Shown: positions 27,755 to 63,605 of the stretch, piece after piece
How positions within the stretch are numbered: position 1 is the first letter of the stretch
Layout of the letters: every line of letters starts with the position of its first letter
The notes under the pieces: generated by a model
The model's input: the letters and a program-made list of their open reading frames with translations, nothing else
Database searches by the model: none
What the model was told of the DNA's origin: nothing
From: Thalia democratica
Taxonomy: Eukaryota
Direction of reading: 5' to 3'
Length of the DNA: 64,000 bases
Assembly: GCA_965202585.1 (NCBI GenBank)
Contig: OZ241829.1
Location: 72,354,001 to 72,418,000 of the forward strand
Made by a program: the position numbers and the translations under genes

Positions 27755-30700
27755 TCATAAAGTCCACTCAATGACGTGGTCGTCTTTCACAGGCAGCGCC
27801 AAACTCTTGTTTATTTTAACAACTCCGTTCTCGAACACTTGGAAGTCACCTTCAATTTACGATTAGGTTATTTTTTATTTAATATTTCAGAGTTAAGTTT
27901 TTAATTTTAATAATTTACATTTACTTGGAATTAAAATTATTCAATCTAAAAATTTAATGTTTTATATTTATACTATTTTCTATCACCTTCTGTGACGTCA
28001 CCACCGTCCACTTTGATGGTCATTGCGTCATCGGCACCGGTGGCCCCGTAAACCCACACCTCGTTGAATATCAGCGAATCGAATTGCGTCATTGCGTCTT
28101 GCGGCGAGTGGGTTACGTCAATGTTGAGTGTGAGCTGTTTTGAAGTTACAGTTAGCATTTTTAATTATCTTTTTATTTCAATTTCATCGATTAAAAAGTA
28201 GTTATCATGCTTTCTATGAATATAAGATGATTTATTAAAATCTGTCAAAATTTAATACGAAAGCCTGGAAAAGTTTTATATTATATATCATAATCCAAAA
28301 CTTTAAGATATATTAGTCAAGGTTAAAGTAACTACAGTAATCAACTCTTTAGGTACTGCAAACAAGTAGAGATAGACTGTATGCAATTAGTTATCCTAGA
28401 AATTATGGTATATTTTTCTTAGTAAACTAACCAGCATTTTTTATTAATCTAAAATAAAACACTCACCACATTTCCACTAATTGAACACGTGAAATCCAAA
28501 ATGGCGTAATCTTCTCCCACAACACGGGATTCCCCGTCATCCCAGTATAACTGACCAACAGCGGATCCTGAATTGTCCAATGCCACCAATATTTTCATTG
28601 GCTGTTGACGGCTCAGCAAGGTTGTTACTTCTGGTTCCTACAAAAAAACAATATTGTTTGAAAGTTTGACAATTATAAGACATTTTTTTTTGTTTTCGAA
28701 ACTTATATTTGTTTTAAATCATTTTCATTAACTATTTTTATAAATTTTGATGACGGCTCAGCTTTTGATTTCTAAAACGGAACATCATTCCGCAAAACTT
28801 AACTATTAAATACAAACAAACAGATGTCTATTAATAGTTGCTTTATCGCATTCTACTGTAGTGATCATTTAAAGATGTGGAAAACTATTTTTCAATAATT
28901 CACACTTTTTATATCTCTAGTTTAAAGGTTGTAAACAAGTTAGTCTCTGCTAAATATTTTTTTTACTTTATGTTTAGTTATGCTAAGTTTTAATTGAAAT
29001 TAAATGTGTATGTTTACACCTAAGAAATGACAAGTATTGTAACCTTACCGATTATAATTATAATCTAGTAAGTAATGATATTTACTATATAAGAAATTTA
29101 GTGTATAAGATGTATTTAAAAAATACTTTTATGCTTTTTAAAGTGGACCCAACTTAAAATACAAACTTGTTTTTTTGAAAACAGTAACAATGCAGATTTT
29201 ATAAAAGTATTTTTTTATTAAAATTTCCATATAAACTTTCAATATCTTAATACCTGCATAGGAATAATGCTTCCTCCCTTTAAATGAATGTTTATTTTCT
29301 CCATAGGAGTGTCAAGTTTGTGGTACCTTCCGCTTTCTACCTCATCTCCCTGTATGTTTTTTAGAATAAATTTTCCAAATCAGTGTTGGTGGCTAATTTT
29401 TTTTCAGCATTTTACTGCATTATATTTATCAAGTATCCTTACTAAAAAATCAACTTGTACCTGTGATTATTTAAAGTAATCACAAGCAAAGTGGTTTTTA
29501 TTTGGTGAAAGTTTGTTTAGTAGCTTATTGACTTAAAAAATAAATAAGTAATGAGTTGAAAATTGATTTTCATTGAATAATTTTTACGTGAATGTTTGTA
29601 AAGTATTTTATTAAGCTAAACACCAACCGTGTAAAAGTCGAACCATCTGTTGTTTTTAGGGAAATACCCGTTTACGAAAATTTCGCTTTCATGCACCACA
29701 GGGCTGATGAGGAGAGCAGAGGAGAGCATAAATTGGAGGTTGATGTTTCTCGTTTCCAAGTCGGTTGGAAAGCTGTAAGTATTTATGTGTTGATTTTTTT
29801 TAATATCAACTTTATAAAGTTTGTAAATATAATTAGTTCATTTTTAGTGTTAAAAAACAAGGCATTGAAAAGAGTAAAGTAAATTATTATTTATCTGAAT
29901 TCTGAACCTCAGAATTCTTGTTTAGTATTGTTCTAAAATTACTAAGTTATTTATATTTTAAATATCTTATGATAAACAAAACTACCTTAGAAATAATGAT
30001 CTTCATAAGATAACAACAGCTTTATGAGAAACTTAATTACAAATGTATAAGCTTATTTTTTTGATACAAAGTAAAATTAAAAAACTAACTTATGTGCCAG
30101 TGATCTAAATAAAGTTCCACCGTTTTTGTTGATGTTCCAGAACTGAGTGTAGAACATCGGCAGAAGTTGATACCTTGTCAGTAGAACGTCTCTTGAAACT
30201 TCGTTCATCATTGTATCGTTGAACCACGTTGGATGCTGGGGCTGTTTTAAAAGAAGTAACGCTGTTTTTTATGTAAAAATTTGGAATACAATTAGTTAAT
30301 TCAGTATGAAATATGAGTATGTTTGTTGTGATAAGGTAAAGTTAAGCTTAAACTTTGTCACTCAAAACAAAATTAACTGTTTACTGATAAACTGCTAGTA
30401 GGTACTTCTTAATAAGAATTAAAAATATATTTAAAACTTTTAATTGGTTTAAAAAAAAACTGTTTTATATCACTTATGACAACACTATACTACTCAAGTC
30501 ATAAAATGCATATTAACAGTTATTCTAAAAGAATTTTAAAATCTATACCTGCCACTCATCATAGTAACAAGCATCTCATTTATCAGTCGTGTGAAAATAG
30601 CATTCTATTAATTAGATACAAAAACTGTTGCGTATCCTTACAGTGTCATTAGATTTGACAAAATATTATGCTTAGAAATGAAAGCATTTTAAATAGCAAA

Positions 30701-63605: not shown

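Follow-up and report, generated by a model that had tools for sequence, protein, structure and literature searches.

A 64-kb window of the Thalia democratica genome (contig OZ241829.1, positions 72,354,001 to 72,418,000 of the forward strand, numbered here from 1 to 64,000) carries on its minus strand, from 63605 to 27755, what we read as one gene for a membrane-anchored α-glucosidase of glycoside hydrolase family 31 (GH31) with three catalytic modules. We give this reading a probability of about 70%, and the single transcript that it implies is inferred from genomic DNA. A single gene is the best reading because the modules are joined by canonical, in-phase splices, the model contains one membrane anchor only, one exon bridges modules 2 and 3, module 3 has no start of its own, the sampled part is under purifying selection, and the genome holds a paralogue of comparable build. 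What appears to be new is the composition of the protein, in which three modules of mixed ancestry follow one another in an order not seen in described enzymes; the three-module architecture itself is not unprecedented.

In a six-frame scan of the window, GH31 signature motifs were found on the minus strand at three separate places. The PF01055 matches of a Pfam profile search likewise fell into three blocks, and GH31-like stop-free segments extended on the minus strand from 63641 to about 27980. The final model comprises 60 coding exons with 59 introns, all GT..AG and 70 to 2,407 nt long, and the sole in-frame stop in its 8,253-nt coding sequence is the last codon. The predicted product, to which the missing start-codon exon upstream would add, has 2,750 residues and a mass of 312 kDa. 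The G+C content of the window is 22-34% (host genome, 802 Mb), and because the G+C content of the DNA is so low (about 25-30%), an open frame of 2,750 codons cannot be due to chance.

Each module consists of a trefoil and a GH31 unit, about 880 residues in all. Module 1 (49193..63222, model residues about 99-990) is encoded by 20 exons after the anchor exon, module 2 (38775..48910, residues 991-1881) by 19, and module 3 (27755..38091, residues 1882-2750) by 20, all on the minus strand. Single exons from all three modules matched the GH31 barrel in Pfam and one exon matched the GH31 C-terminal domain, while the spliced trefoils of modules 1, 2, and 3 scored 37.8, 33.9, and 39.5 bits, respectively, against PF00088 (cut-off, 21). 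All three modules align end to end with reference GH31 modules.

The catalytic motifs are intact. The nucleophile motif is WIDMNE at model residues 557 (module 1) and 1436 (module 2) and WVDMNE at residue 2310 (module 3). The acid/base motif, whose Asp is kept in all three modules, reads HWLGDN, HWFGDN, and TWTGDN, respectively, and the substrate motifs are SRST, SRST, and TRSS; RNH and the D-I/V-D and VWP motifs are found in every module. The catalytic and substrate motifs line up column by column with their counterparts in mouse MGAM and in a further 25 modules. In module 1, a phase 0 intron after exon 55331-55218 splits the nucleophile motif, so that the nucleophile exon (53419..53509) opens with the nucleophile Asp of D-M-N-E, and the acid/base exon (52371..52495) contains both SRST and HWLGDN. 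In module 2, WIDMNE is unsplit within its exon (43613..43817), and HWFGDN lies in exon 42522..42613. The nucleophile exon of module 3 (32539..32635) again opens with the Asp, after W-V, its intron position being the same as that of module 1, and the TRSS and unusual TWTGDN motifs share exon 31285..31446. By its domains and motifs the protein belongs to the MGAM/SI/GAA-type α-glucosidases of GH31, and its enzymatic activity is a prediction.

If the modules act as their residues suggest, each would be a retaining glycosidase equipped with a nucleophile (the Asp of W-I/V-D-M-N-E) and an acid/base residue (the Asp of W-x-G-D-N) of its own. The protein as a whole would be a type II membrane-anchored, heavily glycosylated digestive α-glucosidase consisting of a short cytoplasmic tail, a signal-anchor helix, a Thr/Pro stalk, and three modules, with three independent active sites presented on the outer cell face, most plausibly that of the gut epithelium.

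Module junctions and the number of genes

At junction 1, the upstream exon (49193..49269, minus strand) encodes the final strand of the C-terminal domain of module 1 and ends with 2 nt of an Arg codon, which is completed by the first base of the downstream exon (48750..48910), the exon of the module 2 trefoil. Only 8 residues lie between the last Trp of module 1 and the first Cys of that trefoil. At junction 2, the bridging exon (38775..38889) encodes the end of the module 2 C-terminal domain together with N-C-W-P-D, including the first Cys, of the module 3 trefoil, the rest of which is found in exon 37944..38091. Exon 38091-37944 alone scored 30.5 bits over Pfam positions 18-42, against 39.5 bits over positions 6-42 once it had been spliced to exon 38889-38775. 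Junctions 1 and 2 splice in phases 2 and 1, respectively, and neither introduces a stop. Because exon 38889-38775 carries parts of two modules, junction 2 is the stronger of the two. When all ATG-started frames in the preceding introns were enumerated, none spliced in the right phase into the first exon of module 3, and a hydrophobicity scan of the model revealed no separate anchor or signal for module 2 or 3.

The public sequencing runs that contain this stretch are two DNA runs of one sample. Over positions 46000-51999, the DNA reads show two haplotypes whose exon differences are 19 synonymous versus 6 nonsynonymous, which indicates purifying selection across junction 1, from the last part of module 1 through the junction exons into the first part of module 2. 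Apparent joints among the read contigs in the same interval had sides of 20-21 letters and were taken as repeat noise.

A second multi-module GH31 gene is found on the minus strand of contig C2 at about 34,641,500-34,669,100. Like the gene described here, this paralogue has an anchor exon (...PVYYKVIG) that opens at an acceptor without an ATG, and its modules, each 63% identical to module 1 and with the same insert (described below), are joined without a stop, one exon leading from the final strand of the first module into a Thr/Pro/Asn linker. In contrast to the present gene, it has two modules only, which are almost identical and of recent duplication (branch lengths, 0.014 and 0.028), and no module 3-type unit was found within 11 kb after it.

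Two further kinds of sequence feature were observed. The palindrome TGACGTCA occurs 7 times in the window versus 0.29 expected, at 38412-38419 and 38440-38447 and also at 44575, 51081, 39315, 27993, and 9718. The first two copies, separated by 28 nt, occupy a G+C-richer island within the junction 2 intron; two copies adjoin exon borders, and two lie within homologous G-D-V codons of modules 2 and 3. A regulatory function of the palindromes, or their origin from a repeat family, is possible. The other feature is the duplication of exon pieces. In the intron after exon 44270-44124, positions 44009-44123 (minus strand) repeat the last ~52 nt of that module 2 exon (G-E-V-W-P-Y...D-D) and end in a second gttagt donor, which if used would add 114 nt (38 codons) in frame. 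Frames at 33213-33512 appear to echo the V-W-P-G exon of module 3 (33110-32991) from the intron upstream and might represent either a mutually exclusive exon or a defunct duplicate.

Several points weigh against a single gene with three active heads. All of the runs that contain the stretch are of DNA, and the initiator Met exon was not found. The evidence at junction 1 is the splice itself, and an in-frame ATG at 49362, the only notable ATG-started frame before module 2, runs through the acceptor into exon 49269, uses the same donor, and has a mildly hydrophobic opening; this ATG is a possibility for an internal start and not evidence of one. The two palindromes in the junction 2 intron could be part of a regulatory element. 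Exon borders at three sites have in-frame alternatives, and on grounds of homology 52994 was preferred to 53036, 34176 to 34128, and the linked pair 62460/61020 to 62456/61010. Finally, the T-W-T-G-D-N of module 3 departs from the H-W-x-G-[DN] that is found in every one of the 28 other modules in the comparison.

On a rival reading, tandem GH31 genes (two or three of them, or one with a single module and one with two) have been joined on paper, and the in-phase junctions are a relic of duplication between genes with starts and ends of their own. Reading through either junction donor does reach a stop within 1 to 3 codons, the 49362 ATG and the CRE-like palindromes would be in suitable places, the runs contain no RNA, and fused models of tandem GH31 genes are common in databases, as in an Anolis entry with partial modules. 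We nevertheless consider tandem genes unlikely, since modules 2 and 3 lack an anchor or signal, the introns ahead of module 3 offer no ATG-started exon of the right phase, and the bridging exon spans both modules, with the module 3 trefoil complete only once spliced. The hydrophobic frame at 49362 is A+T-rich intron, a composition that yields Leu, Ile, Lys, and Phe, and the inter-module linkers of 8 to 10 residues are like those of mouse MGAM. We hold it to be just as improbable that the locus is one gene whose main products are one- or two-headed isoforms, made by alternative splicing or internal polyadenylation, with the three-headed form rare or absent. The duplicated exon pieces with usable splice sites in the introns of modules 2 and 3 would allow such isoforms, and several mouse Mgam isoforms of differing length are in RefSeq; against this, the sequence bears no mark of a preferred early end, the frames and motifs are intact in all three modules, and the sampled part is under purifying selection.

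Slightly less probable still is a single protein in which at least one module has become non-catalytic and serves a lectin-like or regulatory role, as proposed for human MGAM2. The unusual T-W-T-G-D-N loop would make module 3 a candidate, as would, for module 2, the replacement of D-I-D-Y-M by D-V-D-T-M and a shortened insert. In placental MGAM2 catalytic Asp residues are reported to be lost (PMC6451114), whereas each of the three modules described here retains the two catalytic Asp residues as well as the (S/T)RS Arg and the RNH His. One gene with three potentially active heads, as the earlier note on this DNA had proposed, is supported by all of the sequence-level tests, among them splicing, the single anchor, the bridging exon, and the motifs. 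The four junction exons named in that note were recovered exactly, with in-phase splices and no stop, and its statements that there is no second transmembrane anchor or signal peptide, that the nucleophile, acid/base, and RS/NH residues are kept in all three modules, and that the product is of ~310 kDa all hold for the present model.

N terminus and gene model

The anchor exon (63449..63605, minus strand), which encodes the presumed cytoplasmic tail and the sole transmembrane segment, starts in phase 0 directly after an acceptor (...ttacag), and the frame upstream is closed by a stop. On this N terminus, read without an initiator Met exon, a polar tail (model residues 1-25) precedes the one segment of transmembrane-strength hydrophobicity in the whole 2,750-residue model (residues 26-49), and a Thr/Pro-rich stalk follows (residues 53-97). 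The Thr/Pro-rich stalk and the first half of the module 1 trefoil are encoded by exon 63027..63222. No in-frame ATG lies ahead of the anchor within exon 63605-63449, and no convincing ATG exon was found among the open frames in 63606-64000 or in the next 10 kb upstream (L001). Because the anchor exon opens at an acceptor without a preceding in-frame ATG, the true 5' end is upstream of 63605, probably outside the window. Of the span of 27755-63605 given in the earlier note, the 3' end at 27755 was exact, and the 5' end has to be moved upstream.

About 7.6 kb upstream of the anchor exon (L001:7242-7278) is a 37-nt stretch that is 86% identical to one located 1.8 kb upstream of the anchor exon of the C2 paralogue (contig C2, about 34670850-34670950). 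The shared core of this element reads TATCACA.AAACACATTGT.CA...TTTAAGAC, and its conservation may mark a promoter or a non-coding first exon. An ATG that adjoins the element in C2 was tried as the start exon and rejected, being in the wrong phase.

The gene model was built with a purpose-written protein-to-genome spliced aligner, followed by manual curation of exon borders. Seven reference modules were used, from a scallop protein (three modules), a starfish protein (two), and a lobster protein (two), and the splice-site weights were trained on the 41 donors and 41 acceptors agreed on by all first-pass runs. Most exons were identical with all seven references, and the remainder were settled by inspection of the sequence. 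Micro-exons of 9-30 nt that the first pass had placed in poorly conserved parts disappeared with a higher intron penalty and the locus-trained splice weights. Splice sites throughout the gene are unusual in that GTTAGT is frequent among the donors, alongside GTAAGT and GTGAGT, and ACAG is the commonest acceptor, with little polypyrimidine tract.

On the minus strand, the exons of module 1, including the anchor exon, are 63605-63449, 63222-63027, 62688-62460, 61020-60857, 58449-58281, 58045-57949, 57178-56940, 56395-56277, 56017-55917, 55846-55758, 55331-55218, 53509-53419, 52994-52847, 52495-52371, 52020-51840, 51498-51379, 51074-50932, 50563-50466, 50190-50023, 49698-49552, and 49269-49193. 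Those of module 2 are 48910-48750, 48330-48221, 47269-47112, 46684-46510, 45804-45671, 45309-45112, 44726-44588, 44270-44124, 43817-43613, 43463-43331, 42996-42920, 42613-42522, 42211-42095, 41508-41360, 41029-40889, 40444-40316, 40019-39887, 39438-39280, and 38889-38775. Module 3 is encoded by exons 38091-37944, 37728-37623, 37420-37251, 37039-36926, 36469-36315, 35922-35803, 35506-35379, 34789-34683, 34296-34176, 33110-32991, 32635-32539, 31981-31845, 31446-31285, 30818-30702, 30241-30090, 29772-29628, 29349-29254, 28637-28467, 28134-27987, and 27849-27755, the last of which terminates in TGA at 27757-27755. Paired stretches of close similarity were noted as repeated translated segments in the intron sequence of module 1 (59313-59600 and 59853-60044), and another pair was noted in that of module 2 (46173-46295 and 46400-46522); these are likely local duplications or a dispersed repeat.

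Elsewhere in the genome, on the plus strand of contig C9 (21145730-21146992), a GH31 match of 357 bits lies in an intronless open frame of 676 codons, unlike every other GH31 locus of the genome. Candidate explanations for this frame are a retrocopy, a gene of bacterial type, and contamination.

Ancestry of the modules

Pairwise amino acid identities among the modules are 46% (modules 1 and 2), 40% (modules 1 and 3), and 36% (modules 2 and 3). A maximum-likelihood tree built from 55 modules placed modules 1 and 2 in one group with the two modules of the C2 paralogue (support, 96/99), and this group nested with vertebrate C-terminal, protostome multi-module, jellyfish, and sea cucumber proteins (89/99). 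Module 3 grouped instead with a single-module protein of scallop (99/96), near "sucrase-isomaltase-like" proteins of echinoderms and hemichordates and outside the C-type clade. A single clade for the three modules was rejected by the approximately unbiased (AU) test, with a log-likelihood lower by 91 (p = 2e-5), and triplication within the gene as the origin of the three modules was rejected on the strength of this test.

Independent support for the separate ancestry of module 3 comes from the insert after VWPD, which is full length in module 1 (~21 residues), reduced to 13 residues in module 2, and missing from module 3. A similar insert of ~21 residues is also present in the C-terminal modules of mouse, hamster, and Anolis, in the jellyfish protein, and in the C2 modules; it is absent from the mouse N-terminal module and from all of the scallop, lobster, snail, starfish, and sea cucumber modules compared. 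Sharing the C-type insert is compatible with a chordate source of the gene but is no proof of one.

By these comparisons modules 1 and 2 are an old duplicate pair of the lineage that includes the vertebrate C-terminal (glucoamylase/sucrase) units, and module 3 derives from a different old GH31 lineage. As its lineage differs from that of modules 1 and 2, module 3 would have been joined by gene fusion, giving an order opposite to that of vertebrate MGAM/SI. The resulting order of heads, as classified from the tree and the inserts (C-type, C-type, insert-less), is the reverse of the vertebrate one, which points to independent assembly. Assembly in an invertebrate lineage, which the earlier note had put forward, is thereby backed by the module tree and the AU test.

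Multi-module GH31 proteins in other animals

A 79-residue exon of module 1 was searched against 1.84 billion representative proteins. Since the search score sums over the modules of a protein, proteins with at least three modules are expected to rank above those with two. No protein more than 69% identical to this exon was found among the representatives, which left no annotated orthologue for comparison, and only four clusters had three or four matched stretches. One was rodent MGAM with four stretches, including mouse RefSeq NP_001355804.1; one contained a 2,753-residue protein with Argopecten irradians XP_069127180.1 as a member; and the other two were a fragmentary mammal-like entry and an Anolis model with partial modules. 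The same search brought up two-module GH31 proteins of starfish, lobster, snail, flatworm, and tardigrade. With the trefoil exon of module 2 as the query, no candidate protein was obtained, and literature searches gave no paper on a GH31 protein of at least three modules from an invertebrate. GH31 proteins with three or four modules thus exist but are rare, and the novelty of the present protein is smaller than the earlier note had assumed. GH31 enzymes with two catalytic sites are said to have arisen by tandem duplication in vertebrates (PMC6451114), an account with which the invertebrate multi-module proteins disagree.

The scallop protein (2,753 residues; cluster member XP_069127180.1, "maltase-glucoamylase-like," annotated as low quality in the database) has a type II anchor, three complete GH31 modules, and nearly the same length as the present one. 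An 8,874-nt contig from run SRR19746220 encodes it in one open frame of 8,262 nt (350-8611) that nothing interrupts, which for a gene of this kind identifies the contig as a transcript. All three of the scallop modules are insert-less and fall into a protostome clade with snail and lobster modules. The scallop triplication is therefore independent of the present one, and a shared origin of the two three-module layouts is rejected. The long form of rodent MGAM (mouse NP_001355804.1, 3,616 amino acids; rat A0A8I6AK41, 3,615 amino acids) also has more than two complete trefoil-GH31 modules, namely four, each covering the whole module profile. The modules beyond the usual two arose very recently by copying of the C-terminal unit (branch lengths, 0.04-0.1), whereas the modules of the present protein are 36-46% identical and belong to two lineages.

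With vertebrate MGAM/SI the protein shares head-to-tail trefoil-GH31 modules with short linkers and the same catalytic motifs, as well as, by prediction, a type II anchor and a Ser/Thr/Pro stalk, and the ~21-residue insert of module 1 is like that in the C-terminal units of mouse, hamster, and Anolis. It differs in having three modules rather than two, in the C-type, C-type, insert-less order as opposed to N-type then C-type, in a module 3 that lies outside the group of modules 1 and 2, and in the loss from all three trefoils of one Cys of the usual CC pair. By analogy the protein would work like MGAM/SI; it is not an orthologue of the two-module vertebrate gene.

In the human C-terminal MGAM unit, the ~21-residue insert lengthens the substrate groove. 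If it does so here as well, module 1 would accept longer chains than module 3, and a division of labor between long and short substrates among the heads would be conceivable.

These comparisons point to several independent assemblies of multi-module GH31 proteins, which would make the multi-headed design a case of convergent evolution. We incline, by a modest degree, to the view that this marine invertebrate built a gut-surface α-glucosidase with three active sites independently of vertebrates, rodents, and scallops, by fusing two old GH31 lineages in the order opposite to that of MGAM/SI. If this is true, multi-headed GH31 enzymes would be a repeatedly reinvented solution in which the order of the heads is free to vary. 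The enzyme mechanism of GH31 as it is known is unchanged by the present findings. As natural variants, the reversed head order and the shortened insert of module 2 could be used to test why digestive α-glucosidases occur in series within one protein and how long a substrate the insert allows each module to take.

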